A DNA stretch of 64,000 bases, from the NCBI GenBank assembly GCA_015680685.1, contig MNCI01003349.1, positions 126,049 through 190,048 of the forward strand, read 5' to 3'. Every line of letters begins with the position of its first letter. Position 1 is the stretch's first letter. This DNA is from Gnetum montanum (lineage: Eukaryota > Plantae > Gnetophyta). The position numbers and the translations under genes are program-made. The notes under the pieces were generated by a model, which ran no database searches, had not been told where the DNA came from, and worked only from the letters and a program-made list of their open reading frames with translations. Positions 9,348 to 61,040 of the stretch are shown piece by piece.

Positions 9348-12070
9348 ATTGTGACATAGTTGGAGATGATATCTTTCATAGTTTTCAAGAAGATATTTAA
9401 AATTTTCTCTTAGTACAAATATTAATAAAGGTATCATTTGTCTTCATCCTAAGAATGGATATCTTCAACATATTGATAATTGGAGGCCTATTACTCTATT
9501 TAATAATACTTATAAAATCTTAGCTAAATGCATAACTTGATGAATTCAAAAGATTATTAAAGAAATCATCTAACATGACTAGAATGGTTTTTAGAGGCAG
9601 AAATATCTTAAATAATATTATTGTAGATTGAAAAGGAATGTAGTGGGCTTCTTGCCACATCTCCATTTTCAATTAATGTTGTTCTATAACAAAGATGATG
9701 TCTCTTCATAATAAGCATTATAATTATTATAATAGGATCCAAAAGGCCATGTTGTAATTAAGACCTAAAAGGGTACATGTAATAATGGCCATGTCTCTTA
9801 AGGTGACCTTTGAGGATTTGAATTAAGTTATTTATACTTAGAAATTAGAAGCTGTATTGGTATGGAGTTGCAGAGCTTGTAAAGATGTGTAACAAGTGCT
9901 AGGTGAAATGAGATAGAAAGGTGATTGACCATCCCTTCTAGTTGGTTACAAGTCTAACCATGGTACAATGTAAGATTAACTTTAAGGGATAGATGCAGAA
10001 GGAAGATAACCCCAACGTATCCTCAAATAATTATCGAGATACATTATTTTCACACTAATAAAGCATTCTTTTCATTTTCATTATGCATTTTCCCTATCAT
10101 TTTCTTTATGCATAATATCAAATGTTATGAATATTTGATTTTTACAAAAATATTTGGGAATTGGATGTTACATTTAGTATCAAAGTAAATCACAACCCAA
10201 GGACCAATCAAAATCAAAGGTTGACTATAATCCAATGATGTATCATGGAGCTATGAACCACTACTAGATGCACCTTAAGTCAAGACCACACATCTACAAG
10301 ACAACCATTAGTGCACATCATGTTTAAGATGGATGTCACTAGCCAATAAGATTCTTTCATAGTAGCTCTCATGCATATTAGTGACTAGAGATCTGATTAC
10401 TGCTCAACAAGGTACATTGCCTATAGGAGACATTGGTAAGAGAAGGATACACTAGTGTAGGTCCCTCTTACCCATCTTGTAGTATTATTATAATGTTAAT
10501 TAATTAATGTGATTGTTAAGTTTTTCCCTAATACTAGTAACCATGGCCTAAGTCTTAGGACTTTATCTCTTTTAGAACTTATCATCCACCTCTACCTATA
10601 ATCTATGCATAGGTAATTTTAAGGAATTTAACCTAGCCATAAGATTATCTTATCTCAATTTTACTAGTAAGTGTTAGTACTAAGAATTTCATAGGGAAAC
10701 TAATACTTAATGGGTAATGTTGTTTTTGATTCTTAGTGCCTTGCTAGGGTATAACCATAATGCAAGATGATAGGCCTACATCACATTTGTAAAGTTGTAA
10801 GGGTATACATGTTACATTTTACCCTAGAGTCACTGTATCATTATAATCAAGCTTAAGTCATCAAGAAGTTCACATGTCATCCATATATTAGCTTAGTAAT
10901 GTTAATTCAAAAAAAGGCCATTTTGATCTTTTCAAATCATAAAACTACAACTTATTTCTTGGACCTTGAAATTATATTCAACACATAGTACTTGTTGAAA
11001 TGATTCCATCAGTAAAAATTTCATCTCAATTGGACTTATGATTTGGGCAATATCACTATTGAAAGTTTCTCATAATGCAAGCATAGAATCTAGAATCTTC
11101 ATTTAGCCAAATCAAACTTTTACCCATAATCTAACAAATCCACCACGTTAACCACCTACATAGGATTTATTAAAATAATGTTAACAAGTTAAAACATAAT
11201 CTTTAAATTTTTGCTTAGACGACATCAACCCACCTAGCATCATGATGCTCTTGCAATAGGCCTTGTAGCTCATACAGGGTCAAGTAGACCTACATTGAGT
11301 CATGCAAGCTTGTTAAGGGTTGTTCTGGACCATTAAAGGTCACACTAGGACTTTTGCATACCATCATCATCCTTCTCAGCATTGTTGTCCTCCTTTACAT
11401 TTTCCTCACCATTATTAACCATCCACCTTTGTGCTCTACCATTGTTGCCTACTATTACTTGGTTTACTTGCTATCGTTGGCCACATAATAGGTGTAGTAT
11501 AGTGTACATGAAAGCCTTGCTACTACATGTCCTTCTTCTTGCCACTGCTACGATGGATCACATCCTTTATTTGCAGCACTATTACCATGGAATCCACCCC
11601 TTTCTTCACTACTATTTTCATCATGATTTCTACCTTTCTTATCACCATTTCCATCATCTTTCTTGCTATCATCTGTGTCATCCAACATGTCATTACCATG
11701 ATCGACACCACTACCACGATTAATGCCATTGCTATTGTAGCCTTTAAAAAAATGTTAGAAATTTCGAGTCTATGGTTTCTATGAGCATTAGTAGCACCAT
11801 TGGATACTGCCTTCTCTAGTGACCATCAACACCTACAAATACTACATTTTTCAACAATATTAGAAACTAAAAATTTCTTCATCAATTGGTGAAAAATTTG
11901 AAATTTTTCATCAATTGACAGAAAATTGCACAAAATGTCAAATAAAGAAAAAATTTTAGATTTAATGTTTTAGTGCAGAAAAAGAAAGAAAAATTCATAT
12001 AATAAAATATAATAAATTTAATCAAATAGTTAGATTAATGGATTAGAAAAGACAAAGAAAAAAATTCTAT

Positions 12071-12124
12071 AATTAACCATGCTTGCTCTAGAGTAGTATT
12101 GGTATGGGTGACCACTTGGAAAAC
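12071..12124 (+). promoter_or_regulatory. 5S rRNA-derived segment (box A-IE-box C internal control region) inside element A
   Basis: Ungapped 40/54 match to plant 5S AGTTAAGCGTGCTTGGGCGAGAGTAGTACTAGGATGGGTGACCTCCTGGGAAGT. Confidence 0.8.
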
Positions 12125-12890
12125 TCTTAGGAAGTCTCAAGTTTTATGCATAAACGTTTTAACTTTGAAAGTCATCATTTTTGATTTTAGAATTCTTCTT
12201 CAGTAAATGAAGGATAATTTCCAATAGATTTTGATCTTTTGGATGTAATGACAAAGTTAGACCTATGTTGTAGAGCTCTAAGAATTAGTTTTTAATCTTT
12301 GTCCCAACACTATGCCTCAAGACCCTCGGATGCTTAATTTGGCATAACTTAGGCATACAATGTCCATTTGTAGCATATAAATAGTCATTTAAAGTATTTT
12401 TCAGCATTTTAAACTTAATGGTAAGGTTAGATTAATCATTTGAGTAAATAATTTGAAAAAATCTTACATTATGTCTTAATAGGTCATAACTTAGACTGAC
12501 TAACCATTCCTAATGATTTAATTGTTGGAACTATTAAATCTAACATCTTTGGTTATCTTGGATCTTAAGTTGAGGTGGTTAACCTCTATAGATAGATAGA
12601 GATCTCCAACCCCTAGTTTGTTGTTAGTTACACTATTAGAGTAAATGTTTTAGGAGAGGTAAAAAGATCATTAAGAGTCTAGGTAAAGTAGCCGATGTTA
12701 ATGACCTAAAAAATCAATTAGTTAAAGAATTATTTGTTGAACTAGAATGGTTAAGAATATGTATGCCAATTCAGCCTACAACTAGATCATGCAGTAGACA
12801 TCAATCATCACATAGAATCATAATCTTGTTTTGACTAGGTATATGATACTCACAAGGAAAAATGACATAAAAAAGAATCCAAGGACAAGA

Positions 12891-13980
12891 ATGAAAGTGA
12901 GAACATATAATGTGCTTGTACAATTCCTAAAATGTGAAAAGATAACATTCACTTGCTCTACCTTGGACCTTAGACTTGCATGGGTACATATACCCATGCA
13001 TCTTAGAAGAATTACAAGATTTAAATGCTCATGTATTATGCCATGAAAATTCTTATATCAATACCAACCCCATTTGAAAAATGTTGGATATGAAGGTATT
13101 TACAAGTAAAAATAAAAATAAAAATTCTTGTGAAGTTCTTCTTTTGAGTCATATGGATTATTCTATTGGAGGAATCACAACATGGATAATTGCATGATCT
13201 TTTACATGGAAGCCAAGTTTGAATTAGTAGAAAGATTTAAATGAAGATTAGAGGATATAATTTTCAAAATTTTGGAACTTCAAGAGATGGAAAAGAAAGA
13301 ATGACCAAGATTCTAGAAAGCTAGATAGCCTTGGCATTAGTATTTAAAATGCAGTCATTATGAAGATGTGTATGTATCATCAACACACATTTAATTGCTA
13401 AATCAACATTTCCAGATATTAGACTTTTTCAAGTGGCCTACTTGATGAACCAAATAGAGAAAATTTTGAAAAATAAGTTATTCCTAACCCATACCGATCT
13501 TAATCCAATGCGATTCATCCTTTGTGGAGACTTTAATGTGAAAGTTAGAAGTAGCATTTATCAATTCTTAAAATATGAGCATGCAAAAGAATCATTGGAA
13601 GAGGAACCCAATTTGAACAAGATGTTCCCATTAATTCAACATTTAATTCCATTAACTAGTGTATATTTTACTTACTTTGAATCTTTAATAGACAAGTCAA
13701 ATCTTGAACTTTAAGAACAGATGATGTTGATGAATAATATTCACCAAGAATTATAATTTATCAACTATGCTACCAACACTATTAAAGAAGATTCAACATC
13801 ATTGTTCATGAGGATTCTAACTATATTTGGTATGATGCTCGATTCTTCCAAGTTACCAAGCTGTTAGAGTTAATTCTTAAGGAAGAAATTGAGAAGGAAG
13901 ATCAAGCCCTATCATCCCAAACAATGCCATCTGTCATATATCCCTTATGATGGAACTACAACTACTTCTATTAATTCATG
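12891..13980 (+). pseudogene. CCR4-like: Intronless CCR4-like deadenylase (EEP superfamily), disrupted; copy A
   Basis: MKVRTYNVL, DNCMIFYMEAKFELV, INTHL, FILCGDFN, IQHLIPLTSVY, NYA, ALSSQTMPS-(D)H-IPL. Stops and frameshifts present. Confidence 0.9.
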
Positions 13981-16968
13981 AGGTTAATCAAGATCAAGGG
14001 GATTCTTAACCTTGCCTTTATTCATAATTTTCCTATATGTATAAAATGTAAGTAAAATATCTTAGGATAATACAATTTGGAAAAAGGGATTTACTCTACC
14101 TTCACTTGGATAACTAGATATGAGTTCCACTTTTTGTGATCTTGGTTAGGATTAGTGATTGGTGGTTAGTAGACCTTTCATTTACCTCTTGGCATTACTT
14201 ATAGAGAAAGGTAAGTATTGATAAAATAAGACTTAATTTCCACATATTCTTCACTAATATTATTTTTATACAATAAATAGGAGAACATTAGGATATTCAA
14301 ACTTTAGTGAAAAGAGAAATTAAAGTATTAAAGCACTGGAGTTGGAAAAAAGATTGTGAATGTGGACTTGTTCAAGGAAGAAAAAAACCTAAGCGGGGTA
14401 GATTATCATTTCTTTATTTCTAGATGGTGTTATTTTGTAATAATGATGATGTTTGTTAATGTCAAGTATTGTAATTGTTATAATAAGACTAGAAAGGACA
14501 AGTTGTAATTAAGACCTAAAAGGACATATTGTAATAATGGGCATGTCTCTTGAGGTGATCTTTGGAGCTTTAACCGAAGGTATTTATACCTAGGTAATAG
14601 AGGTCATATCAGCATGGATTTTTAGGGAAAATAAAGATGAGTAACAAGTATTAGGTAAAGTGGGAGAAGAAGGATTCAACATCCCTTTTGGGTAGTTACA
14701 AGTCTAACTATGCTCCAAGGGATTGATGCTAAAGGAAGATAACCCCAAGGAGTTCTTAGAGCATTACCTTGATACACTATTCTACATTACTAAAGCTTTC
14801 TTCTCATTTTCCTTATGCATGTTTCTTATCATTTTCTTTATACATAATGTTGAATGTTATAAATATTTAACAATTGTCATGATATCCAAGAAAGGGATGT
14901 CATACTTTTGATACTAACAAGAACATTGCTTTTATTAAGTTAGATTATACTAAATCTTATGACAAGATTGAATGAAATTTCATTATTTTTGATCTCTTTA
15001 AATTGGGATTTGATGATTATTTTATCTATCTTATCTATACTCTACTCATTGAAGCTAATTCTCTAGTACTAATTTTGGATTGAGTTCCTCCTCTTCTCTT
15101 CAATAGTCAATTTTGTCCTCTAGCTTTCTATATTTTTATTATTGCTATAGAATTTCATTCACATAATTTGCATTATAATCTATAAAGGAACATCAGTAAT
15201 GTAACATCCCTATTTCTAAATGATGCTACTTCATAACAAAGATGGTGCATCTTCATAACAAGTGTTATTGTTATCATAACAAGATTTGAAAGGGTAGTTG
15301 TACTTGAGACTTGAAAGGATGCATTATAATAATGGACATGTCTCTTGAGGTAACCTTTGGGGGTTTGACCCAAGAATTTATACCTAGGCTTAGAAGTCAT
15401 GCTAAGCATGGAGTGGTTTATCTTGGAATGGCAAGTCATGGGAGCTAGGTGAAGCGAGACAGGAAGTGGACTAGCCATCCCTTTTGGCTAATTATAGGCC
15501 TAACCGTGATGGTAGTGCTTGACTGCCTCTAAGGGATAGATATTGAAGGAAGAAAATCCTAAGGAACACTCTCAAATCATTATCTAGATACACTATTTGA
15601 TATCAATAAAACATTCTTTTCTTTCTTTTTTGCACATTCTCTGTTAGTTCCTTTATGCATAATACCAAATGTTACATATATTTGACATTTGGTATATAGT
15701 CTTCTTATGCGTAATGTCTAATATAATGTATATTTGACATTTGGCATGATATCTTGAGACAAGATGTCATAATTAGTATTAGAGAAAACCATGAGCCAAG
15801 GACCATTCAGAACCATGGGCCAACTAGAACATGAACTTGATGATGAACCATGAAGCCATGACATAGGAAAAATCATTGATCATCACCGAATGCACAACAT
15901 GTCCAAGATGATTTATGTAAGCTAGAAGATACCATACCATTTATTTCATGAATAATGGATTAGGAATCTACAAAAAGTGTAAATCCCACTAACCAACAAA
16001 ATTCATTCATGGATATCATTGATTGATGAAGATTTGACTATGCCTCATCAAGATTCATCAATGGAAAGGTATGTTGGTAAGACAAGGATACATTGGTACA
16101 AGTAACTCTTATCCATATTAATACGATAAATATTAATTAATTAAGTTCATTGTTAAGTTACTCCCAAAATGTTAGTAACCATGACCTAAATTGATCTTGT
16201 TTTGTTGAAACTCAGTATCCTAAGCAACTTAGAGTCATTTATATGTCATCATGTCTTCGATATATCAACCTTGTAAGGTCGTTTTGGTAGAATAAGCTAG
16301 TTTTGGATTTTTTAAAATCTTGAAATTTCAATTTTTTTTGAACCCTAAGATTATGTCCAATGCATATTGTTCCTTGAGATGCTTCCAATGGTACAAATTT
16401 TATCTTGATCGGACTTACAATTTGGGAGATATTCATGTTTAAATTTTCTCATTTAGTGTGCATTAAATAATACTAAATTATTATTAATTAATTAAAAATA
16501 ATTTTAAAAAAAACTTCAGAAAAAAAAGAGAAGGGAGGTTAGGGGTTCCAACCCAAGCCTCCTCCTTATCCAATTTTTATTTTAAATATATAAAAAAATT
16601 AAATTTGATCCTAGTAGCTAGGGTTACGACTGGTCATTGCTATCGATAGCAATAAGGCCTGTTGCATCATTGTGCAGCATGGGTTGATAGGCTCGGCTAT
16701 GCAATGTTTTTGCAAGGAAATGACTAGTGGTAGTGGAGCTTTTGCTACCCTACATGGCCTTCTGCATAGCCATCACCTTACCATAGCTATCTTTCCCTCA
16801 CCCTGCCATGATTGCCTAGTGCTACTCCTTCCTATCAAGTGCCACATGCATTTGTTGCCATCCAACACATGCCTTTCCATAGTTTCCATCCAATGCTCTA
16901 TTGCCACACTATCCTCCTACTTGCATTGTCCATTATTGGCATCGTCACTTTTGTTTGATGTCGTCATT

Positions 16969-17497
16969 CATAATGGTTTATTTTGGTGCTTCATGGGCAT
17001 TGACGGTGTCATCCATAATGACTTGTTCTAGCACTTCATGGGTACTAATAGCACCATCCATAATGGTCCATTTTGATGCTTCATGTGCATCAATTGCCTT
17101 GTTCGTAATGGCCCATTCTAGTGCTCTGCAGGCATCAACCGCCTTGTTCATAATGGTCCATTCTGGTGCTCCGCGGGCATCGACAATGTCATCCATAATG
17201 ATCCCTTTTGGTGCTGTGTAGGCACCGATGGTGTAGTCTATAGGAACCCATCTTGATGCTCCATTGGCACCAATGGTGCCATCCATAGTGGCCCATTCTA
17301 GCACTCCATGAACATTGATGATACTATTCATAATGGCCCATTCTAATGCTTTGTGGGCATCGATGGCGTTGTCCATAGTGGTTGATTTCAGCACACCACA
17401 GGCATTGATCGCACTGCTAGTAATGGCCAATTCCAGTTCCCTGCATGTATTGATGATGCCATCGATAATGGCTTATTTCTATGCCTTTTGGCATTGA
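16969..17497. repeat. 45-bp tandem repeat, 12 copies, inside element B
   Basis: Unit CATAATGGCCCATTCTAGTGCTCYGCAGGCATCRACNGCCTTGTT, with starts at 16969, 17014, 17059 ... 17464 in exact 45-nt register. Confidence 0.92.
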
Positions 17498-18172
17498 AAA
17501 CCCTAGAAATTGCATGCAACACTACCTTTTGTATGGTCTATGTTGGCCCTTACAAGGGTTGCATGGATCCTTGTGTGGATCATGTAGGCCTCATTTGGGC
17601 CATGTCAGCTCGAAGCTAGGCATGTAGGCCCCATTGGGGGGTTGTGCATTGCCCATTTTGGGCCATGCGGGTCCCTTTGAGGGCTATGTGGGTCCATGAA
17701 GGAGTCAAACCAACCTTGGGTAGGTTGTGCCAAATTTCTTTGTCTTTCACTCGTGTGCAACCACATTGACCCTCATGTGGGTCAAGAAGAAAATGCCGTT
17801 GCTGTTGTTGCATTGCCTTCCTCCTATGAAATGCACCTCTATTGCCACCATTGCCTAAGTAAGAGTATACCATTTCCTGAGCAGTGTATGTTATCATCGT
17901 CAAGAGAATGTCATCAATGCTAAGCACAAGCTACCACCATCGTGACCATTGCTATCACCCCTTGCCTCTACCAAGTAATGGGAAAATTTTCTATTAATAG
18001 ATGGAAAATTTGAACTTTTCTATTAATCAATGTAAAATTTGAAAGTTTCATCAACTAACAAGAAATTCAAATTTTGGTCTGTTAGAACGTTAGTTTAAAG
18101 TTAGAAACGTGGAAAATAAATTTTCAAAAAAGGAATTTGACATGTTGGTAGCATTGGAGATGAGAATCTAGT

Positions 18173-18226
18173 AATTAAGTGTGCTTGTTTTGGAGTAGTA
18201 TTGGGATGGATGACCTCTTGGGAAGT
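18173..18226 (+). promoter_or_regulatory. 5S rRNA-derived internal control region inside element B, followed by a T-run
   Basis: Ungapped 43/54 match to 5S nt ~50-103, followed by TTCTTTTTTT (Pol III terminator-like). Same position relative to CCR4 as in element A. Confidence 0.85.
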
Positions 18227-18928
18227 TTCTTTTTTTGTGCCAATGGTTTTGAACTCTAGAAGCCATAACTTTTAATTTTGGAAGTCTTTTTTGACAAAAA
18301 AGACTCATTTTCTATAGATTTCAACCTTCTAAACATAATGGTGAAGTCAGATCTATGTCATGGAACCCCAAAAATTAGTTTTCTCCCCTTGTTGTCTATA
18401 GTGCCTTAAAACCCTTAAAAGCTTAATTTTAACATAACTTGAGCATACGATGTCCTTTTTCAACATATGAATGGTCATTTCCAACATTTTTCACCCTTTT
18501 GAACTTAATGGTAAAGTTAGATTTATCATTTGGGTATTCAATAATTTGATGATATCATAAATTGTGCCTTATGAATTTAATCTTTTAGACCTTAAGATTT
18601 AGTGCTTAATGTTTGTAGATAGCCTTAAGATCCGTATGGCTTATCATTAGTACATTATTGGAGTCAATGTCTGAAGGGGTTAGAAAAGCCATTAATATTT
18701 TGATGATGTCATTAAATATTACTAAAATTAGATAATTTAGTAAATTATTAAATCATTTGATGTATCAGTTGATTAACAGAATAGTCTTCAATGATCAAGA
18801 AAATGTATATTAATTCACTTTGCAACAAAATCATATAGCAAAATAATAGAGAGACTCAAAATATTGTTTCAACAAGGTGTATGATACCCATGAAGAGAAA
18901 TGATCTAGAGGAAAATACAAGAATGAGA

Positions 18929-20013
18929 ATGAAAGTTGCAACATACAACGTGCTTGCAAGATCCCTTGTGAGTGAGAAAAAACATCCGATATGTCCACCA
19001 TGGGCCTTGGATTTACAACAATATTGATACCCATGCATTTTAGCAGAATTACAAGATTTGGATGTTGATGTTTTATGCCTAAAAGAAGCCTTTCCATGGG
19101 AATTTCTATACCAATTCTAGCCAAATTTGGAAAATATGGGGTTCAGAGGTATTTGTAAGCAAAAAGGTTCTCTTGGAAGTTCTTCTTTCAAACCATTTAG
19201 ATAAGCCTATTGCAAAAATGGTAACATGGATGATTGTGTGATATTTTATAAAGAAGATAAGTTTGAATTGGTACAAGGATTTTAATGGAGTTTAAAAAAT
19301 ATGATTTGTGAAATTCTAGAACTTCAAACCATGGAAAAGAAAGAACAATCATGATTTTGGAAAAATCACATAGCCTTGGCAGTAAATCTAAAAACCCATC
19401 TATCAAGAAGATGTGTATGTATAGTCAACACACATTTAATTGCCAAACCAACAGGTTCAGATGTTAGATTATGCCAAGGAGCATAGTTGATTAAGAAAAT
19501 AGAGGAAATTTTGAAGAATAAGTTATTCTTGAGCTATACTGATCCAATTCCATTTATTCTTTGTGGAGACTTCAATGCAAAAGTTGAAAGTGGTGTTTAT
19601 CAATTCTTAAAATATGGATGTGGAAAGGAATCTTTGGATGATCAACTTGATTTGAAGAAGAGGTTTCCATCAATTCAACATGCAATTCCATTGGCTAATG
19701 CATATTCTACTTATTTTGAATCTTCAATAGATAAATTAGATTCTAGAATTTAGAAACAAATGATGTTAATTGTTAGTACTCAACAAGAACCATAGTTTAC
19801 CAATTACTCTATTTTGATTAATGAAGATGGATCAACAAAATTATTTATTGAAACTTTAGATCATATTTCGTGTGACGTTTGATTTTTCCAAGTTGCCAAA
19901 TTACTAAAGTTAATTTCTAAAGAAGAAGTGGAGAAAAATCAAGATCAAGCTTTGCCATTTTGAATAAGACCATGTGATCATATACCACTTATGGTAGAAT
20001 TACAATTACTTCC
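18929..20013 (+). pseudogene. CCR4-like: Intronless CCR4-like deadenylase (EEP superfamily), disrupted; copy B
   Basis: MKVATYNVLA..CPPWALD..DVDVLCLKE..DDCVIFYKEDKFELV..VNTHL..DVRLCQ..IPFILCGDFN..HAIPLANAYS..EP*FTNY..FIETLDHI..ALP..PCDHIPLMVEL. Collinear with the plant CCR4a/b nuclease domain. Confidence 0.92.
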
Positions 20014-23000
20014 ATCAATTCATAAGGTTGATCAAGATCAGGAAGTATCTCACCCTTACTTTTATTTGATAAATCTTATTATTTTCATCATTGATTAATT
20101 TATATTTTAATTAGACAAGTAAAATATCTAAGGTAATAAAAATTAGGAATAAAGAATTTACCTTGTCTTCACTTGGATAACTAGATCTGAGTTGCACTTT
20201 ATGTGACACTGGTTAGGACTAGTGATTAGTGGTTGGTAGATCTCTAATTTAGCTCTTGCCAGTATCTTAGAAAATAAGGTAAATATCAAGAAAGTAATAT
20301 TTAATTTTCCATATATTTTTCTTACATGTGTCTTATTTGCAGAGTGAGCAAGAAACAACTTCAAGTCCAAAAGGAGAAATCAAATTATTGGAGCATAGGA
20401 GCATAACAGAAGTACTAGAGTTGGAAAAAGATAGTCAATGTGGACTCATTCAGGGATGAATGAAATTTAAGTGGGGTAGATTGTAATGTCCCCATTCCCA
20501 AATGATGCTACTGCATAACAAAGATGATGCCTCTTCATAACAAGTGCTATTGTTATTGTAACAAGACCCAAAATGGTAGTTGTAGTTGAGAGTTGAAAGG
20601 GTGTTTTGTAATAACATATGTGTCTCTTGAGGTAACCTTTGAGGGTTTGACCTAAATAATTTATTCCTAGGCTTAGAGGTTGTGCTTAGCATGGAGTGTT
20701 AGAGCTTGGAATGAAAAGTCATGAGAGTCAGGTGAAGTGGGGTAGGAAGTGGACTAGCCATCCCTTTTGGTCAGTTATAGGCCTAACCATGATGGTAGTG
20801 CTTGATTACCTCTAAGGGATAGATACCAAAAGGAAAAAAACATTAAGGAACACTGTTAGAGTATGATCCAAATACACTATTTGATATTAATAAGGTATTC
20901 TTTTCTTTCTTTTTCTACACATTCTCTATTACTTCCTTTACACATAATGTTGAATGTTACATGTATTTGATGTTTGGTTCATAGTCTTCTTACACATAAT
21001 GTCTAATATAATGTATATTTGATGTTTGCCATGACATCTGGGGATGGGATGTCGCAATTAAGGAAATTTCTATTAATGTTTAAGGTATGTAATTATCTAA
21101 CATGCAATTTGTAGATAATTCCTTTATTATAGTCAATAATTCTCTACGATATTTCAATACTCTTCTAGCTAGAGTGAAGGATTACTACATGTTGTCTAGC
21201 TTTCATATCAATTGATAAAAAAATAATAATTATTAATTGTAATGGCAATATTGATGAGTGAGTTACTTTCAAGCCTTGGACAATTCTATAAAGAAATTCT
21301 ATCTTCAAGATTTTAGAAATGTATTTTTCTTTTGAGCCAATATTACTAGTTCTGTTTTTCAACATGCTTGGAAATGAACATCTAGAATTTATAATAACTT
21401 TTAACCAAGCATTAATAAAGTCATTCTTTGTGATTAGCCTACTTTGTCTACTTCATTTCTATGCATTTGAAATTATCTTAGACCATTGTTTCTTTGCTCT
21501 ATTTGGAAGCTTTAGTATGTAGTTATTTTCTAGTAGTAAGAGCATAACTATGATCTCTCTTTAGGTCTCAAATATCAGATTTTGAAAGATGTCACTTTTT
21601 ACCTACAACTTCAAGCAAAAATGCCCTAGTGAAAGATGAATAATTAATTTTTTATATAGTATTAATTTCTTTTTGTTTTGGAGGCTCAAGGATGGGAAGC
21701 TTTTAGATTTAATTGCTATTTGTTATTTATCTTTGATTGATGTATTAGAAAGAGTTTTCTCTTTTCCTTTACAAGAAATCCTTTGGTAATAAGTGAAAAC
21801 TCACGAGGGTACTTTTGAAAGAGGGCAAGGCATAATTATTTTTCTACCCTAAAGGGAAGGTTTTTAGGATTTTGTGTAAGAATGAAAACCTAAGAAGACA
21901 TCACCTAAAGCATTGGGCTTTTTCTTTAGATTCTTTCTTTGATGATCTAATGTACTTTGATGTTTTTTAATATCATTATTCTTTTTTTTTAGATCTAATA
22001 GCTTTCTCTAATTCTTAGTAGGAAGAATGATCCAAATCCTAACAACATTTACATCACTTTAACATATATGATTAAGCTTAAAATAGAAAAAAAAAATCAA
22101 GGTAGAAATACATTACTTTGATGAAATACCAATTGTTGTAGGAAAGGAAAATATGATAGAAAATGATGACATAAATGTTTCCATCATATTATCCATGATG
22201 ATTGATCTTACGTCAAGAATATTTAAAGTTAGCTATAGCCCACTTTTAAGTTTTAGTCTTTGAGTTAATAGTATTCGTGTTAGATAAGAAAAAATTTATC
22301 TTATGATGTATCTATCCAAATTGATTAATACTTTTTGTAGTATTAATAAACAAATTCATAGAAGCTTCTATCTTCTATAGCTTTTTTTATTAACATTTGA
22401 TGATTCTCATGATTAAAATTAACTTTTTTGATCACATCCTCACCTTCATATTGTTTTTTCTATTTTCAAGAGATTTTATTTTATTTTCCTTGTATTATGT
22501 GATCACCTAATTCATGATCTTGGTTCATCAAATTAAGTAATATATTTTGTGTATATTCCCTAATTGATGTTTTGTACTGAATTCCTTCATGTTTTACGAT
22601 GTATGTAGGTATGTATGATGCTAGTTATGAGGATGTTCATGATAAAGATATGGACTAATTATTTTTAGGCTAGATTTATCATTAGATTTCTATTAGGTAA
22701 TTTGTCTTAAATTTAAGAAGTTATTGCAAGGTGTTAGATATTATTTATTATACTTGATGTTAAACTTAATAGTTAGTATTTGATGTATGTTGTTTAGTGC
22801 TCTTTGATTGATGCAGGTTGTTATTAACTTTCCAACATATTTATTTATAAATTAGCAAATACTAAGATGTTTTGTATGCTTCCATTATGTTTGGAAGTGA
22901 AAATGATTATAAATTAGGATTTTGAAATAGATAGCTTAGTAATTATTGTGAACTATTATATTGACAAAATATTATTCTTTGGAAAAGTTTATATGACATT

Positions 23001-30866: not shown

Positions 30867-33800
30867 TCCTAAGGATAAAAAATTTAGGAGGGTTGAATAA
30901 GTTCCTCAATTTGAACAATCAAGACACCAAAAAATGCACTCAAAATTACATGGTATCCTAACTTGGGCACGTCCACACTTAGAGGGTATAATCCTTACAT
31001 ACCCCTAAACTCTTTTCCTTCAAAAATGTGGTTTAAAGGGAATCACAACCTTCATAAAGTTTGAGCTTTGTACAAGGTGTTCTTTCATAGAAACTCACAC
31101 AAATCCACAAGGTTCCAACAAGCTCAAAATGTGATTTTAAGGATCCCACAACCTTTATAATGATGTCAACTCCACATAGAGTGTTTTCTTACTGGAAACA
31201 CACTCAACCCTACAAGGTCCCAATAAGCTCATTAGATGCCTTCTCATAAGAAGCACATCAATCCAACAAGGTTACAAAGAGAAAAAGAGATCAAAGAGAG
31301 AACGTAACTAAGCTTTATAAGTTCCTTGATTTAAAGTTCTCATAATACAACTTACAATTGATAGAGAATTGAAGGATTAATTATATTACAAGATATAGAC
31401 AATGATGGAATAATCAGATGAATAGTGCTTTCTCTTTAACAAGGATTTCATATTATTTTAAATCCTTTTTCTTTTCAAATAGCCTTCAAAATTCATGCAA
31501 TGGCTAGGAAATGACTAGTTAGGATGTCTTATTCAAGCTTGGTGAGACATCACCAAAAATTCATGTTGTAAATTATAACCTTCATTTTCCAAATTGAGGT
31601 AAGTTTTGATTGTAAATGTAAGATTTGTAGTCCATGAGCTACAATATTGCATGCATTAGCTTTTTTGGGGCTAAAAAATGCCTCAAAAGTTATTATTGCC
31701 TTACTTCCCAAGTAGAGCAAGATACCTCATTACTATATTTGGGCTTGGGAAGGTTGAAAATGCCTTGGGAAAGGCCAAAAGTAGCATTTTAATGGGTTTT
31801 CATAGGGGTATAGCTTGAACTACGCTCGAACTATCTACTCTTGGGTGTAGATGGAATAGATGGAATTTTTCATTTCCAACCTAGCATAGTCACCATCAAA
31901 ACCTAGCCTAGATGTGGCATTGGAATTGTTGGGATTTTCCATTTTGGAATTGGTGACATTGTCCATTTCCATTTCCATTTTCCTAGTAGTGCCAACATAG
32001 TCCTCACAAGTCTTTAGCAGTTGCAACATGGGTAGTGTAGACAACATTTTCCATGATTTTCAAAATTTTCCAACAACTTTAGCATAGTCCACCAAGGCTA
32101 GTAGAGTTGGGATGGTGTTAGCATAGTCACAAAAGTTCATTTACTATTTATAGTAAATGAATGGACTTTGGTGGATACGGTGTATACCAAACTTACTATA
32201 AATGGTAACCATGCTGAAAGTTGTAGCCATTGTAACATGCAAATTTATATCAATCTTTCAGCAATTAGGATAGTGATGTGCAAGCCTCAAAAGTAGCAAT
32301 TCCATACCTATAAAACCCAAACATAATCACCTTATTCCAGTTCTAGATTTTGAAGCATTTTCCATAGCCCAAAAAAGCAATTGAGCATTTTCAAAAGCCA
32401 AGAGCCTTTTTAAAACCTGAAACACATATGAAAACATAAAATTGGTAGCTATGCTAGGCATAGAAACTCCCACATAATACCATTCCACTAAGGGTGGAAC
32501 ACTAATCCATGACCATGATTTCTGATCCTAGTGGAAAGTAGTGTGGAGCTGCTAGAAACTAGAGCTGGGAAGTATTTGGATCATGGAGTTTTAAGTGCAG
32601 ACCATAGGCTCTAATGGACTATAAGCCCCTTCAAGAAACTTCTTGTGCACCTACCATAGAATTTGTACCTTTTGAACCCACCTCTTTATTTTCCAATTTT
32701 AATAAAGTCATAGTTCATTTTTGTGTAGATTTGATTTTACATTTTTTTTTTGTGTTAATTTTCCATTTCGGATTTGCAATTTCATTTCCACTTACATTTC
32801 CATTTTCATTTAAGTTTACATTTTCATTTCTGTTTATGTTTACATTTACATTTACATTGTCATTTTACACTTGTGTGAGTTTGTAGGTGATTTGCTAGAT
32901 CATCTAGGGTGCCTTGGATCTTGTTTTCAGAGGTCCTTGGGATTTGAGGCTAAAACTATTTTGATGCTTGGGATATTCCAGTTTCTATTCTAGAAACCAA
33001 ATTTCCCAAGTTGAATAGTTTTTTGGTGCTTGAAAATCCTTTTTCAAGTCTTTTTCCAACACCAAGTTTGCTACATTTCCAACTTTAAGAGCCAATTTCA
33101 TTATTCTGTTGGTTGTTTTTGCAATGAGTTGGGTGTTTTTTCTATATTTTCACAGCAAGTCATTAGATTCCTTGGAACTAGTGTACTTTAAATCTAAAAC
33201 ATTTTCCATTACAAAAGCCTTATCCCATTCCAAAAGCCCTTTTTCATTTCAAGACCCATTGCGGTTGTTGGAAAAACCTCTTTTTTTCCATTTTCACCAC
33301 TTAGCATAGTTGCTTGAAAATTTCCTAGTACACGGCATAGGACATGATCGTATACTATGTAGTATTTCATAGTAGTAGTTTTCCACTGTCTTTTCATTTT
33401 TGGTCAACTATGTTAGTGGATTATCCCACTTATTTTGTTTTTACTAAAAATAGTAAAAAGCCTAAAATCATCTTTTGACAATATCTATTAGCTGATCAAT
33501 TGTCCTTCTCCTTAACTTGAGAAATATGGCATTCAGCCAAGATGTAGTTCATGTCTATGAATTGAAAGATCCTACGATCATAGAATGAAGATAATCACTT
33601 AGACAAAGGGGTAAAAACTCAAATTTTTTAGTTATCAATGAGGAGTTCTACAACTTCCTCTATGCCAAGATACAAGTTGGACTCTTAACACCATGCTCTG
33701 AATCTGACACTAACCATTAGTTCAAAATTATACATTGGGATGGGAAAGAATACATGCCATATCCTTATGACCAAATATCCCTCAATGACTTTTATGCACA

Positions 33801-39450: not shown

Positions 39451-42400
39451 GTCAATTTTGCCTTAAAAATAGCTCTAGAATGATCCCTCAAGTGCCCAAA
39501 CTCCTTTAGCAACCATGTAGCCTTATACCATGGTCTGCTAAGGCCTAAAACTAACAAAATCTAACCTTGTTTTACCAATATTGATCAATTTTTATCACAT
39601 GTATTTTGTTTTAATGGAATTGACCTTGTTTCATGATGTTTTGACTTGTTTTGGTCTTGTTATGCATTATTGACCATGATTACGATCAGTTGACCCTATT
39701 TAGTTTCATCATATCTTTAATTTCATCATATCCACATTATTTTCTTTAATATAGACTTTGTTAACCCTTGTTTAGCCTTTGATTGGTGTTAAGTGATGGG
39801 GTTTGACCATCTTTGACCATCATTTGACACCATGTAACACTGACTTGCCAAGGCCTTAAACTGGCAACATGGCTTGCTAAGGCATAAAATTGGCAAAATT
39901 GTAACCATAATTGGCCATATTTGATCTTATACTACCCTTGGTGACCTCTATTAACCATGTTTTGACCTATTTTGGGCATCAATTTAATTTTTTTCAATCC
40001 ACTTTGTCTTTATTATTAGAGTATTTTGCATTGTTTTAACATTATTCAACCATTATATCACACATGTGTTACTTGATGTGCTTATGTTGTCATGTAGGAA
40101 TGAGCTAGGAGAATGGTCTTAAAGCCTAAAATAAACCTCTCTCATGATGTTGTTAGATCAAAGTGACCTTACTTACCCAAATCTTAAGCTTGAAACCATT
40201 CTACTATACAACCATAACATCTTGAAGTGGCCTGATGACCATTGAGCTTGAAGTTAAATGCATCATGGAGGGTCCCTTAGTTGAAATTCTCATCTAGACC
40301 ATGCTGGTGGGAAGAAAGCACTCAAAACCAAGTTTCTCACTAGAAATTAAGCTTGCTCATGACATCATCAAACCCTTGTAATGCAACATTAAAGCCATTA
40401 CAGAGCCTTGATTACATCTAATGCTCACATGTTTGCTTGTAGTATTGTTTACCCTTGTTGATAGGCTACAATGAATGACTGATGTTGATGATTTTGATGG
40501 TCTACAACAAGCAAGCTTTCATGCTCTTTCTCTCTCTATTTGGCATAATGAATGAACTGCAAGATTTGTAACATCTAATGCACATTACATAGATCCCTTT
40601 ATGTTGTGACAATGGTGACCCATTGTGACTTGGTTTGCTGGTTATCTAGTATGGCCTTATGCATTGTATTGTAACAACATGACTTCTTTGTGTGGTTTTC
40701 TTGTTCTATTGGAGTTGTACTTGTAGGATGAAGCTTGAAATCATCATGGAGGTGAAACTTGCTATAGTAGTAAGTCATCATGTGACCTTGATGCACAAGA
40801 TTTGGTGAGTTTTTCTTGCCATATCAAGAGTGCTTGTCTCACATCATTATCATTACCATCCCTTGAGCCCAACCCCATAGCCTGATCATAACCTTCCTTA
40901 CCCTTGAGTAACAATGATGACCTTTGTTTGACACTTATGCATTATGGCCATTTAACATCTCCTTCTTCATGCTCCACCATCAAGTTTGTTGAATGTAATA
41001 CATCTCATTCAATTGGAAAACAAAATCAAAATTGGCCTTGGTAATAAAACCTAATGAAGGTTTTTCTCCAACAAAAAAAATTACCAAGAAGACGAATGAC
41101 TAATGAAGCATAAAAAGGCAAACCGATGGCTTCAAAAATGCAAAGGAAGAAGCCCAATGGCCAATGAAACCTTGGAACACAGTGTTGGTTTCTCAAACAC
41201 ATTGACGTGTGACTAACACTTCAAAAGATGAAGCACCAAGACCACATTGATTGATTAACATATCATTGCCATGAATGTAATGATGATGTCAACATTTTGA
41301 ATTCATTATTAGCCTCCATAACTATTTCCCTATAGCAAATGATTGACATTATCATAATCTTATTCCATCATCATGAAAATCACTCTTTAGATTGGTTTGA
41401 CACTATTTAATCAAGCTTTGAGAGGGAATGTTGGTGATGGATCTACAGTGGTGTTTTGTATTCTTTTTTAATGTCTTTTGGGTGAATCATCAAAACATCA
41501 ACAAAGAGGGACCAATGAAACACCACCAAAAATTCATGTTGTAAATTATAATCTTCATTTTTCAACTTGAGGCAAGTTCTTATTGTAAATGTAAGATTTG
41601 TAGTCCATGAGCTACAATCTTACATACCTTAGCTTTTTGGAGCTAAAGAATGCCTTAAAAGTTATTATTACCTCACTTCCCAAGTGGAAAAAAGTACCTC
41701 ATGACTATATTTGTGCTTGGGAAGGTCAAAAATTCCTTGGGAATGACCAAAGTTAGTATTTTCGTGGGTTTTCTTAGGGGTATAGCCTCAAATACGTTGG
41801 AAACATATATCCTAGGATGTAGATGGAATAGATGGAAATTTCCATTTCTAACCTAGCATAGTCATCACTAAAACCCAACATAGATTTAGTGTTGGAATAT
41901 TTGGGATTTTCCATTTTAGAATTGGTGACATTTTCCTTTTTCATTTCCATTTTCATTTTCATAGCAGTGGCCATTGTAGTCATCCTAAGTCTTTAGAAGT
42001 TTTAGCATGACTAGTGTAGATAGCATTTTTTATTAATTCTAGCATTTCCCATAATTTCTAGTAATTTCTAGCATTTTCCAAAGCCTTCACATTTTTCATG
42101 ATTTTCAACTTTTTCCAACAACTTTAGCATAGTCCACCAAGGCCAATGTAGTTAGGATGGTATCAATGTAGTCACAAAAGTCCATTTACTATTTATAGTA
42201 AATAGATGAACTTTCATGGCTATGATGTATTCCAAACTTACTATAACTGGTAACTACATTGAAAATTGTAGCCATTGTAACTTGCAAATTAACATCAATC
42301 TATATGTAATTAGGATAGTGATGTGTAGGCCCAAAAAATGGCAATTTCATACCTATATAATCCAAATGTAAATACCTTATTTTGGTTTCATATTTTAAAG

Positions 42401-43491
42401 CATTTTCCATAGCCCAAAAGAGCAATTGAGTAATTTCCATAGCCTAGAGCCTTTAACAATCTTAAACATCTTTGGCAGTAAAAAATGGTGGCTACGCTAT
42501 GTGTAGTAACTCCCATGTAACTCCCATGGAATAGCGATTTGTGACCATGATTACTGATCCTAGTGGAAACAGTGTAGAGTTGCTAGAAATGGAGCTAGGA
42601 ATTATCTAGATTGTGGAGTTTCAAGTGCAAACCATAGGCTCCAATAGACTTTGAGCCCCTTTAAGAAAGTTCTTGTGCACCTAGCACAAAATCTATACTT
42701 TTTGAACCCATCACTTTATTTTCCATTTTTAATAAAGTCATAGTTCATTATTATACATATATGATTTCATGATTCAATTTTTGTGTTTTTATCCATTCCA
42801 GATCTACAATTCCATTTTTACTTATGTTTCCATTTTCATTTAAGTTTACATTTTCAATTTTTTTATGTTTACATCACCATTTTATACTTTTTTAAGTCCT
42901 TGGATGATCAGCTAGACTGTCCAGGGTGCCTTGGATCCTGTTTCTGGAGGCCCTTGGAATCTAAGGCTAAATTTTTTTTGGTGCCTACGATATTATAGTT
43001 TTTGTTCTAGCAACTAAATTTTCTAGGTCCAACACTTGGAACGTTGCACTAAAAATTGGCAACTTATAGGTGGGACATCCCACTAGAAATTAGGACATCT
43101 CATCTAGGATGTTTCATTTGGGACATTACAGTCGCAATTGGGACATCTTGCTATTTTTATGGTACATCTAACTTGAACCTAAGCTTTCATCTTTAGGACA
43201 TCTACTGATCTTTTGGTATGTCTAGGTAGATACCAAAATGTCTTCGTTTGGCTTGTAGGCTTCATGCATCCTTCAAATCCTAGAGTCTTGATTGAGTATA
43301 TGGTGATGCAACTTTCATCTTAATCTTCTCAACTCTCTCTTGTCCCAATCTTGTATTTTACTATATCTAAATGCTTTAGTTATCTTTTTCTAATCTTTCA
43401 AAGTCTTAAAAGATACCAATAAACACATTTTTTACATTGTCCAATTTCTAAGGTTTTAACATACCAAAAGCTCAACAAGCTTGCCCTTTTT

Positions 43492-44063
43492 TGTGACATC
43501 CCATTCCTAGATGTGATGGAAAACATCAAATATATGTTATATTAGACATTATGCATAACAAGATAATATACCAAATGTAAAATATATGTAGCATTCAAGA
43601 TTATGTGTAAAGGAAATAAAACAAAAAATGAAAAAAGAAAAAAAGGAAAGAATGCTTTATTGATATGAAATAGAGTATCCAGATCATGTTCTACGAGTGT
43701 TCCTTAGGGTTTTCTTCCTTCGATATCTATCCCATTAGAGGCAATCTAGCACTGGCACGACAGTTAGGCCTACAACCTAGCTAGAAGGGATGGTTAGTCC
43801 TATCCTACTTCACCCAACACTTGTGACTCACCTTTACTGGCTCTGCCACTCGATGCTGGCATGACCTCTAAGCCCAAGTATAAATGCCTTAGGTCAAACT
43901 CCCAAAGGTTACCTTGAGAGACATGTCCATTATTACAATGCATCCTATCAGGTCTCAATTACAACAGACCCTTTCAGGTTTTTTTTATAATAATGATAAC
44001 ATTGTTATGAAGAGGCACCCTCTTCATTATGCAACAAAACCATTTTAGAATGAGGATGTTAAA
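43492..44063 (-). mobile_element. Solo LTR (572 bp) of the CCR4-carrying family (B subfamily)
   Basis: Reverse complement aligns end-to-end with 15200-15771; TGTGACATCCC...GGATGTTAAA termini. No matching TSD. Confidence 0.9.
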
Positions 44064-59799: not shown

Positions 59800-61040
59800 G
59801 TGCGTCTGATGTGTCGTCTGAGCTCCCCTAGGAGCTCTCACAAATAATGTCCAAAATGCTATATGGGCAACGCCCCCCCTGAGCCACTGACGGGCACTGT
59901 GTACATGTGCTCGGTCAAGTTGTCGTTGCCGTTGCTCCTCCTCCTCCCTCAAGGTGCTCCTGCTCCTCCCGGGCCACCGCCTCCTAGGCCTGACGAGCCG
60001 CCTCTTCTTGGCGCAGCTCCTCCCTGATTCGGTCTTGGAGCTCATCAATGAGCTGGGCTCGCGAGGTTTCCATCATGAGTGTGTGCTGCCGGCTCAGTTG
60101 TTGTGCCTATTCACGAAGCTAGGCATCATGGTCAGCGTGCCACTGAGCCAGGGTCTCGGTCCACTTTGCCTCCGAAATTTGTTGCTCGGCCTCCCGAGCA
60201 GCAGCAATCGCCTGTTGCATTTCTGCCCCCAATTTGGGGGGGCACTGGGGGGTCAAGCGAGGGGGGGAGGGATTTCGACGAGAGCGGCTTCCCCAAGTGA
60301 GGTTCAAAGCAGTCTGCCGTTGCTGAGTGGCCGGGGTGGGGGAAATCGGGGTGGTGGGAGGGCATCAGCGAAGCGACCCCCAGGGGGGTAGAGGACGGGC
60401 CAGGAGCCCCTAGCCCCCCGCCCCCCACCACAAAGCCAAAATTAACCCCAAGTGGTGCCCACGTCGTTTATGGCGTAGGGCCTCAAGGAAGAACCGCGGC
60501 AGGTTAACCTGGGTGCCGTCCTTCAAGCACCTCAAGAAGGTGAAATGCAACCCTTGGAGCTTGGACACATTGCCCGACTGGACGAAAAAACGTTCCACCA
60601 AGGTGACGGCGCGAGCCCAGAGGCGCGGGAGAGAAGATCGAGGGACCTGGCGGCTCTACGTTCTCGAGGTTAGCCCCTCGAAAAAGGTCGTAGAGTTCTG
60701 GAGGTTGCGGGAGGTCGGTAGGATGACATCACCAACGGCCGGGACCCCCAAATAGTTGGCCAAGGCGGCTTCCGTGAGCCGAATTGCACGACCACGAAAG
60801 AAAGTTTGATCACCGTGCCAATTAGTAAAGAACGTGTTGTCAAGAAGGTCAGGGTCCTCGACTAGCCTCTACAGTAGGTCGGCCCAGCCGCACTGGCAGA
60901 CCATCTGCTAGAGTTCCGCGTCATTCTGGTAGACGGCGCAGTCAGGTTTATACGTCGGCGTCGCTTCCATGGTGTCCGTAAGCTCGCGCCACGCTCTGCA
61001 GGTTTGCAGGATAAGTCGCTGGGAGGGGGGGGGTTGCCGC
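59800..61040 (-). pseudogene. Extra reading frame in the LINE: putative plant transposon protein (Transposase_32/PF20167-like) domain plus coiled-coil tail
   Basis: One frame to ~59930, broken only by TAG/TGA stops, then an apparent frameshift: QCGWADLL*RLVEDPDLLDNTFFTNW..FRGRAIRLTEAALANYLGVPAVG..LRCLKDGTQVNLPRFFLEAL..HHLGLILAL, followed by a Q/E/R-rich coil. Confidence 0.7.

Follow-up and report, generated by a model that had tools for sequence, protein, structure and literature searches.

A 64,000-nt stretch of the Gnetum montanum genome (hereafter the window; assembly GCA_015680685.1, contig MNCI01003349.1, positions 126,049 to 190,048 of the forward strand) contains two neighbouring long terminal repeat (LTR) elements, element A (9653-14904) and element B (15200-21056). 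Each carries an intronless, now broken gene for a CCR4-type nuclease with the EEP fold. We propose that A and B are probably ancient, independent insertions of a non-autonomous LTR family in which this nuclease was a selected accessory gene. Positions are those of the window unless another sequence is named.

Anatomy of elements A and B

Direct-repeat and self-BLAST analysis revealed four related repeats of ~500-575 bp and one more in reverse orientation. The LTRs of A and B alike have TG...CA ends, and the five LTR copies have inverted termini in common, with the consensus TGTAACATCCC...GGGATGTCACA. The elements and their associated features, including target-site duplications (TSD) and primer-binding sites (PBS), are the following.

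9648-9652, no strand: element A, left TSD copy CTTCT, read at the LTR edges; right copy CTTTT at 14905-14909, 4/5 match
9653-10172, plus strand: element A, 5' LTR, 520 bp, with TG...CA termini; 73.6% identity to 14404-14904
10175-10186, plus strand: element A, decayed PBS of initiator-Met type, 2 bases past the LTR; 9/12 match to TGGTATCAGAGC, the mismatches being transitions only
14391-14403, plus strand: element A, polypurine tract AAGCGGGGTAGAT, abutting the 3' LTR
14404-14904, plus strand: element A, 3' LTR, 501 bp, paired with 9653-10172
15195-15199, no strand: element B, left TSD copy AGTAA; right copy ATTAA at 21057-21061, 4/5 match
15200-15771, plus strand: element B, 5' LTR, 572 bp; 82.3% identity to 20482-21056
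15774-15785, plus strand: element B, decayed PBS of initiator-Met type, 2 bases past the LTR; 9/12 match to TGGTATCAGAGC, again with transitions only
16962-17215, plus strand: element B, 45-bp tandem array in the variable middle of the internal region (Tandem Repeats Finder: period 45, 2.7-3.6 copies)
20469-20481, plus strand: element B, polypurine tract AAGTGGGGTAGAT, abutting the 3' LTR
20482-21056, plus strand: element B, 3' LTR, 575 bp, paired with 15200-15771
43492-44063, minus strand: B-like solo LTR of this family, with a 52-bp insert; 77-79% identity to the B LTRs

By this anatomy, A and B are LTR retrotransposon insertions. A preliminary description of the window, made from the letters alone, had listed two complete elements, each with paired LTRs, a decayed Met-type PBS, a polypurine tract and a 4/5-matching TSD, together with a third, solo LTR at 43492-44063, and all of these were confirmed in the sequence. 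The solo LTR shows no matching TSD at its edges. Divergence within the LTR pairs corresponds to a Kimura two-parameter distance (K2P) of 0.34 for A and 0.21 for B, whereas LTRs of A are only 67-71% identical to those of B (K2P 0.40-0.46). Because the LTRs are closer within than between elements, A and B represent two separate insertions, of which A is the older. The two copies had also been described as diverged and as bearing different LTR subfamilies. The divergence and the two length classes (~510 and ~573 bp) stand, but the "subfamilies" differ mainly by a single 52-bp indel close to the 3' end. Internally, A and B are collinear over five blocks arranged around a variable middle, where the copies of the 45-bp array of B match one another at 64-80% of positions and have no counterpart in A. 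The elements lie in the same orientation with a gap of 295 bp (14905-15199), which may be a coincidence, as a high-copy family would allow, or the result of a preference for inserting locally.

Coding capacity for gag, protease, reverse transcriptase (RT), RNase H and integrase was not detected in either element, although strongly decayed remnants could fall below detection. In tblastx comparisons, the upstream internal regions of A and B were similar in a frame-independent manner with no frame-specific coding signal; nine open reading frames (ORFs) gave no match in Pfam; and tblastn of gypsy protease, RT, RNase H and integrase pieces against the window gave no match. These searches bear out the earlier remark that both elements are free of gag and pol motifs. 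The A/B family is non-autonomous and, at 5.3-5.9 kb, has the size of a large retrotransposon derivative (LARD). Since A and B are without gag or pol, their copying and integration would have depended on the proteins of an autonomous partner, and none was found within the window. One candidate, a pair of LTRs at 31543-33004 and 41516-43021, was ruled out by its unrelated ends and the lack of a recognisable pol. This second old pair consists of ~1.46-kb LTRs that are 78-83% identical and ~10 kb apart, with no recognisable gag or pol between them; the solo LTR of the A/B family sits just beyond its right LTR.

Both elements also contain, between their LTRs and ~0.7 kb upstream of the nuclease ORF, a segment related to 5S rRNA.

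12026-12132, plus strand: 5S-rRNA-derived block of element A (Rfam RF00001, 22.9 bits, E 0.54; gathering score 38)
18125-18235, plus strand, approximate limits: 5S-rRNA-derived block of element B, 75% identity to A 12026-12132

The block in A retains an almost intact box-C-like core and scores under the gathering threshold, and that in B retains the core of the 5S 3' half followed by a T-run. An Rfam search at the gathering threshold and a tRNA scan gave no hits over the window. The most fitting interpretation of this block is a second cellular RNA taken up by the element. The T-rich ORF of 1.2 kb could not be a transcript of RNA polymerase III.

The CCR4-type nuclease frame

The nuclease gene lies on the sense strand of both elements, 2.6-3 kb downstream of the 5' LTR.

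12843-13970, plus strand: element A, CCR4-type EEP nuclease pseudogene, in three frames, with five frameshifting indels and ~11 stops
18881-20014, plus strand: element B, CCR4-type EEP nuclease pseudogene, in a single frame, with 10 stops and no frameshift; ATG at 18881

Stops and frameshifts were read through as X. Positions 18857-20011 of B align with CCR4 proteins end to end, in one frame and in one high-scoring segment pair (tblastn E 4.6e-35), and the X-masked read-through reaches E 1.4e-43 in blastp. Although the overall identity of B to reference CCR4s is only ~28%, 36 of the 50 residues that are invariant across 18 of them are retained, and the catalytic series is complete (the N of YNVL, the E of LCLxE, the D of DxC, NTH, GDFN, the D of TLDxI, and DH). 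In A, indels of 1, 16, 1, 1 and 1 bp break the frame. The preliminary description had reported an intronless CCR4 frame of ~1.1 kb with the full motif series in both elements; an intronless frame of ~380 codons is indeed present in both, but three catalytic motifs of A have been lost through deletion and frameshifts. Isolated pieces match Pfam PF03372 weakly (E 0.005-0.008, below cutoff), and in the PDB a 116-amino-acid piece of A (13364-13711) matches yeast Ccr4 at E 2.6e-6 and ANGEL2 at E 1.2e-5. Both copies in the window are dead pseudogenes.

Cellular CCR4 docks to CCR4-NOT/CAF1 through an N-terminal module, which consists of leucine-rich repeats (LRR) in fungi and animals and of a MYND-like zf-C6H2 finger in plants. 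When the N-terminal 240 residues of 11 CCR4s were compared with A and B by tblastn, no MYND-like finger or middle domain was found upstream of the nuclease domain. An ATG common to both copies (B 18881, A 12843) is located 16 codons before that domain. Since the finger and the middle domain are undetected, the predicted product would be a free-standing nuclease domain of ~380 amino acids. Plant-type features are nevertheless present: A and B share with plant CCR4a/b a linker motif upstream of the nuclease domain, and both contain an insert of ~20 residues before EPxFTN that is specific to Viridiplantae. The latter corresponds to the plant CCR4a/b-style segment noted earlier, and it is missing from oomycete and other non-plant CCR4s.

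Over the gene, A and B are 72% identical in nucleotides (K2P 0.37) and 59% identical in amino acids. Selection was assessed by a single pairwise comparison of these two copies. In the true frame, the ratio of nonsynonymous to synonymous divergence (dN/dS) is 0.42 by maximum likelihood (ML) and 0.62 by YN00, compared with 1.26-1.49 in control readings (two other frames and the reverse complement); the bootstrap 95% ranges are 0.39-0.93 for the true frame and 0.84-1.79 and 0.93-2.16 for the controls. Codons that are not alike in A and B differ synonymously in 31% of cases when read in the true frame, against 15% in the controls (Fisher p 3e-5), and 3' of two stop positions that the copies share (see below) the figures are 33% and 18% (p 0.048, 80 codons). 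A broken consensus ORF with a dN/dS of ~1 on internal branches had been named beforehand as a refuting outcome, that of a neutral passenger; the A-B pair gives 0.42-0.62.

Both copies decayed neutrally after insertion, and the extent of this decay can be gauged from the LTRs. Their K2P values (0.34 and 0.21) predict ~0.27 of post-insertion decay, both copies summed, and the A-B dN is ~0.29 with a dS of 0.5-0.67. As dN is close to the predicted decay, nearly all amino acid change can, as a rough estimate, be post-insertion, and the extra synonymous change would have accumulated before insertion. These comparisons show that purifying selection acted on the nuclease ORF as the lineages of A and B separated, and that the catalytic residues stayed intact up to insertion, in line with the earlier suggestion that the gene persisted, possibly selected, as the family diversified. 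Purifying selection together with intact catalytic residues indicates that the gene was functional in the element and no mere passenger.

Relatives of the nuclease gene

A phmmer search with the 116-amino-acid piece of A against 1.84 billion protein representatives returned 37 weak hits (best E 2e-7, identity <=44%), and the named ones are CCR4-NOT subunit 6. No members of the A/B family were found in the protein collections searched, and a metagenome scan with an 88-amino-acid piece of B gave no hits. The best full-length hit, P0004, was used as a bridge query to gather CCR4 relatives. This recovered canonical plant CCR4a/b proteins (PF03372 plus zf-C6H2) from angiosperms, Ginkgo, Araucaria, ferns, bryophytes and charophytes, as well as an unannotated group (P0053-P0058 and P0004) found in JGI, ENA and Logan assemblies only.

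In the ML tree, A and B share a stem of 3.17 substitutions per site and have terminal branches of 0.41 and 0.61. They are sister to the P0053 group (ultrafast bootstrap 90, SH-aLRT 93) and fall outside the canonical streptophyte CCR4a/b clade (100/99), which is very uniform, with branches of 0.05-0.3. In the approximately unbiased (AU) test, placement of A+B inside seed-plant CCR4a/b was rejected (log-likelihood difference, dlnL, 24.4, p 0.0002), and placement as sister to the canonical streptophyte clade was weakly rejected (dlnL 6.5, p 0.033); the groups were named after the tree had been seen and a long branch is involved, so that these results are indicative only. The preliminary description had asked for such a placement and had assumed a processed capture of CCR4a/b. 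The gene is indeed CCR4-type and intronless, and has the plant-type insert, but its identity of ~28%, the missing MYND finger and the AU test (p 0.0002) do not agree with a straightforward processed copy of host CCR4a/b, and the nearest group in the tree is that of P0053.

In P0053 itself, a protein of 537 amino acids, Pfam identifies a MYND-like finger (zf-C6H2, E 0.0013) together with an EEP domain (E 6e-22). The P0053 gene is intronless and intact on four metagenome contigs, L001 to L004, of ~35% G+C and 99.8-99.9% mutual identity. On L002 (1-10652) it lies next to the remains of a Ty3/gypsy element.

L002 6973-8586, plus strand: P0053 ORF, the sole ORF of more than 120 amino acids in 10.6 kb
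L002 5245-5256, minus strand: initiator-Met PBS with one mismatch, preceded by ...CA
L002 2902-3225, minus strand: decayed Ty3/gypsy RT (Pfam PF00078)
L002 2254-2568, minus strand: RNase H (Pfam PF17917)
L002 1887-2129, minus strand: integrase zinc finger

The ORF is located to the right of the gypsy internal region on L002 and to the left of the same region on L003 and L004, and the repeat has sharp ends on L002 at 308|309 and 10216|10217. This arrangement probably represents an element with LTRs of ~5 kb that hold the CCR4 ORF in antisense orientation, and a tandem or circular unit of 9.9 kb is an equivalent alternative. Full-length variants in the P0053 cluster are 1-22 residues apart, with an overall spread of 0.2-8%, and truncated variants (N-terminal, C-terminal and internal-start) are 2-8% diverged; judged by its protein sequences, the cluster looks like a multicopy family, some of whose members are intact and others broken. 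For contigs of 23,471 and 40,277 bp, diverged copies of the L002 RNase H (81-85% identical) are reported, and CCR4 fragments of the P0053 clade are reported for contigs of these sizes too, which are taken to be the same contigs from their equal size only. A viral-contig scan with a profile of the P0053 group gave one irrelevant hit at 24%, and a search of the ESM Atlas with P0053 gave generic streptophyte CCR4 clusters only.

Outside the ORF, L002 has no DNA similarity to the window, indicating that the L002 element belongs to a different family from A and B. Because the nearest relatives of the A/B gene are intronless, multicopy and linked to retrotransposons, the association between element and gene looks old.

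Interpretation and comparison with known retroelements

Several observations weigh against a family of elements with a selected nuclease gene. Both copies are dead, so A and B do not demonstrate protein production today, and no route of expression was identified for an ORF lying 2.6-3 kb past the 5' LTR. Only two copies are compared, and the dN/dS ranges of true and control frames just touch. The position beside the P0053 clade involves a very long branch and is moderately supported, and no relative closer than the hits of the phmmer search (<=44% identity, E 2e-7) was found for the A piece among the 1.84 billion representatives. Finally, two stop codons occur at the same codon in both copies, where ~0.3 coincidences are expected, which hints that the frame was perhaps broken already in the ancestor of A and B.

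B 19751-19753 and A 13712-13714, plus strand: shared stop at codon 305, TAG in B and TAA in A
B 19793-19795 and A 13754-13756, plus strand: shared stop at codon 319, with the same pair of triplets (B TAG, A TAA)

These stops speak for a neutral passenger, in which a processed CCR4-like mRNA and a 5S fragment were picked up by template switching into a non-autonomous LTR element that happened to multiply, and the ORF was never useful, being broken before A and B separated. The heavy damage to both copies and the wide dN/dS ranges are compatible with such a history, and co-capture of 5S sequence fits promiscuous template switching. A passenger does not explain the twofold synonymous enrichment over controls (p 3e-5), which persists downstream of the shared stops, or the survival of every catalytic motif in B, a copy ~72% diverged from other CCR4s. 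Among the private stops, about half go back to C-to-T or G-to-A transitions, which makes coincident stops plausible; given this origin and the persistent synonymous excess, we read the shared stops as convergent post-insertion hits, and we regard a passenger as unlikely.

Still less likely is a recent retrocopy of host CCR4a/b that came to lie between LTRs and owes its divergence to post-insertion decay only. The Viridiplantae-type insert, the upstream linker motif and the lack of introns would fit this origin. The branches that carry the decay are short (0.41 and 0.61) against the shared stem of 3.17 substitutions per site, the AU test speaks against nesting among seed plants (dlnL 24.4, p 0.0002), the MYND and middle domains are undetectable in A and B, and canonical streptophyte CCR4a/b proteins are very uniform (branches of 0.05-0.3).

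The adjacency of A and B, co-oriented and 295 bp apart, could also suggest that no mobile elements are involved and that a host gene family with LTR-like flanks was spread by segmental or tandem duplication. This is highly improbable, since each copy has its own 4/5 TSD, PBS and polypurine tract in the canonical places, LTR pairs are more alike within than between elements, and a solo LTR lies 22 kb away. Re-use of the EEP domain as a DNA endonuclease for integration, as in LINEs of the APE type, which would make A and B a semi-autonomous new kind of element, is the most improbable of all: LINE endonucleases share the EEP fold and a faint Pfam Exo_endo_phos_2 match was seen (E 0.16-0.2), but the sequence is clearly CCR4-type, the element has no RT, and 5-bp TSDs and TG..CA ends are signatures of integrase.

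Elsewhere in the window, G+C content is 55-58% at 60001-64000 and ~33% in the remainder. For a minus-strand ORF of 357 amino acids in this region (61041-62114), a search gave no homologue at E<=1e-20.

If A and B do belong to a family with a selected nuclease gene, the proteins of an autonomous partner would copy and integrate such elements in trans, with integrase as the agent of insertion in view of the 5-bp TSDs and TG..CA ends. The internal region would comprise two modules derived from cellular RNAs, the 5S-rRNA-like block and the sense-strand ORF of ~380 codons. Lacking the MYND or LRR module by which cellular CCR4 is held to CCR4-NOT, the nuclease would most likely have acted as an unregulated 3'-5' RNA/poly(A) exonuclease, with RNA of the element itself or competing RNAs as its targets. 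It might thereby move RNA from translation to packaging in sites resembling processing bodies (P-bodies), or it might speed RNA decay and so leave less substrate for RDR6-dependent silencing. Particle assembly of the Ty elements of yeast requires P-body and mRNA-decay factors; RDR6-dependent silencing in Arabidopsis is counteracted by the decay of RNA in the cytoplasm; and a plant rhabdovirus reportedly recruits host CCR4 for its replication. Against this background both roles are plausible, and the data do not discriminate between them.

A broader proposal is that CCR4-type nucleases are an old and recurrent accessory gene of plant LTR retroelements, occurring as a full-length MYND plus EEP form in antisense within Ty3/gypsy elements (P0053 on L002) and as the nuclease-only sole gene of a high-copy non-autonomous derivative (A and B), and controlling RNA tails for packaging or for evasion of silencing. 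We offer this tentatively and consider it possible, though doubtful.

Several known systems resemble A and B in part. LARDs and TR-GAG elements (PMC4350172) likewise have LTRs, a PBS, a polypurine tract and TSDs, lack pol, exceed 4 kb and are presumably mobilised in trans, and TR-GAG elements also keep a single ORF. That ORF is gag, whereas the ORF of A and B specifies a cellular-type RNA nuclease, and LARDs are described as non-coding. Cassandra elements, which are terminal-repeat retrotransposons in miniature (PMC7215508, bioRxiv 10.1101/2023.07.14.548913), are non-autonomous LTR elements with a 5S-rRNA-derived segment, but their 5S sequence, with its internal promoter, is in the LTRs and they are smaller than 1 kb, whereas A and B have it internally, are about ten times larger and are protein-coding. 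Extra and antisense ORFs are found in Tat/Retand/Ogre Ty3/gypsy elements (PMC11963269), comparable to the CCR4 ORF of L002, which is antisense to gag-pol and outside pol; the domains reported there include TRP28, Smc and others but no CCR4, and the ORF of A and B is on the sense strand of elements without pol. Among cellular genes, plant CCR4a/b (carbon catabolite repressor protein 4 homolog 1/2) share with A and B the EEP fold, the catalytic motifs, the linker motif and the insert before EPxFTN. A and B differ from them in their ~28% identity, the missing zf-C6H2 finger and middle domain, the lack of introns and a position outside the canonical clade.

Closest in kind are retroelements that have taken up host enzymes. 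Orchid Ty3/gypsy elements acquired a functional ALKB domain, an m6A RNA demethylase (PMC9289625), and other retrotransposons acquired DNA methyltransferases (DNMTs; PMC5890265). As in A and B, a host-derived enzyme of RNA metabolism or silencing was fixed and placed under selection. The ALKB and DNMT domains reside in autonomous gag-pol elements, whereas in A and B an enzyme of another family (CCR4/EEP) is the sole gene of a non-autonomous element. Full-text literature searches found no LTR-borne CCR4 and no paper joining "non-autonomous LTR" with CCR4, in keeping with the preliminary statement that no described LTR family built in this way was known.

New enzymatic genes are rarely fixed by plant retroelements, and the few known cases, ALKB and DNMT, all suggest a conflict over silencing and over what becomes of RNA. 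If our interpretation is true, a high-copy element with a lone, selected CCR4-type nuclease would bring mRNA deadenylation and decay into this conflict, as an RNA-decay effector encoded by a transposable element. A and B would then be a non-autonomous element that pays for its own gene, raising the question of what a parasite of a parasite gains from a deadenylase. For the biochemistry of such an enzyme, the intact, multicopy, gypsy-associated P0053 relative offers natural open copies.

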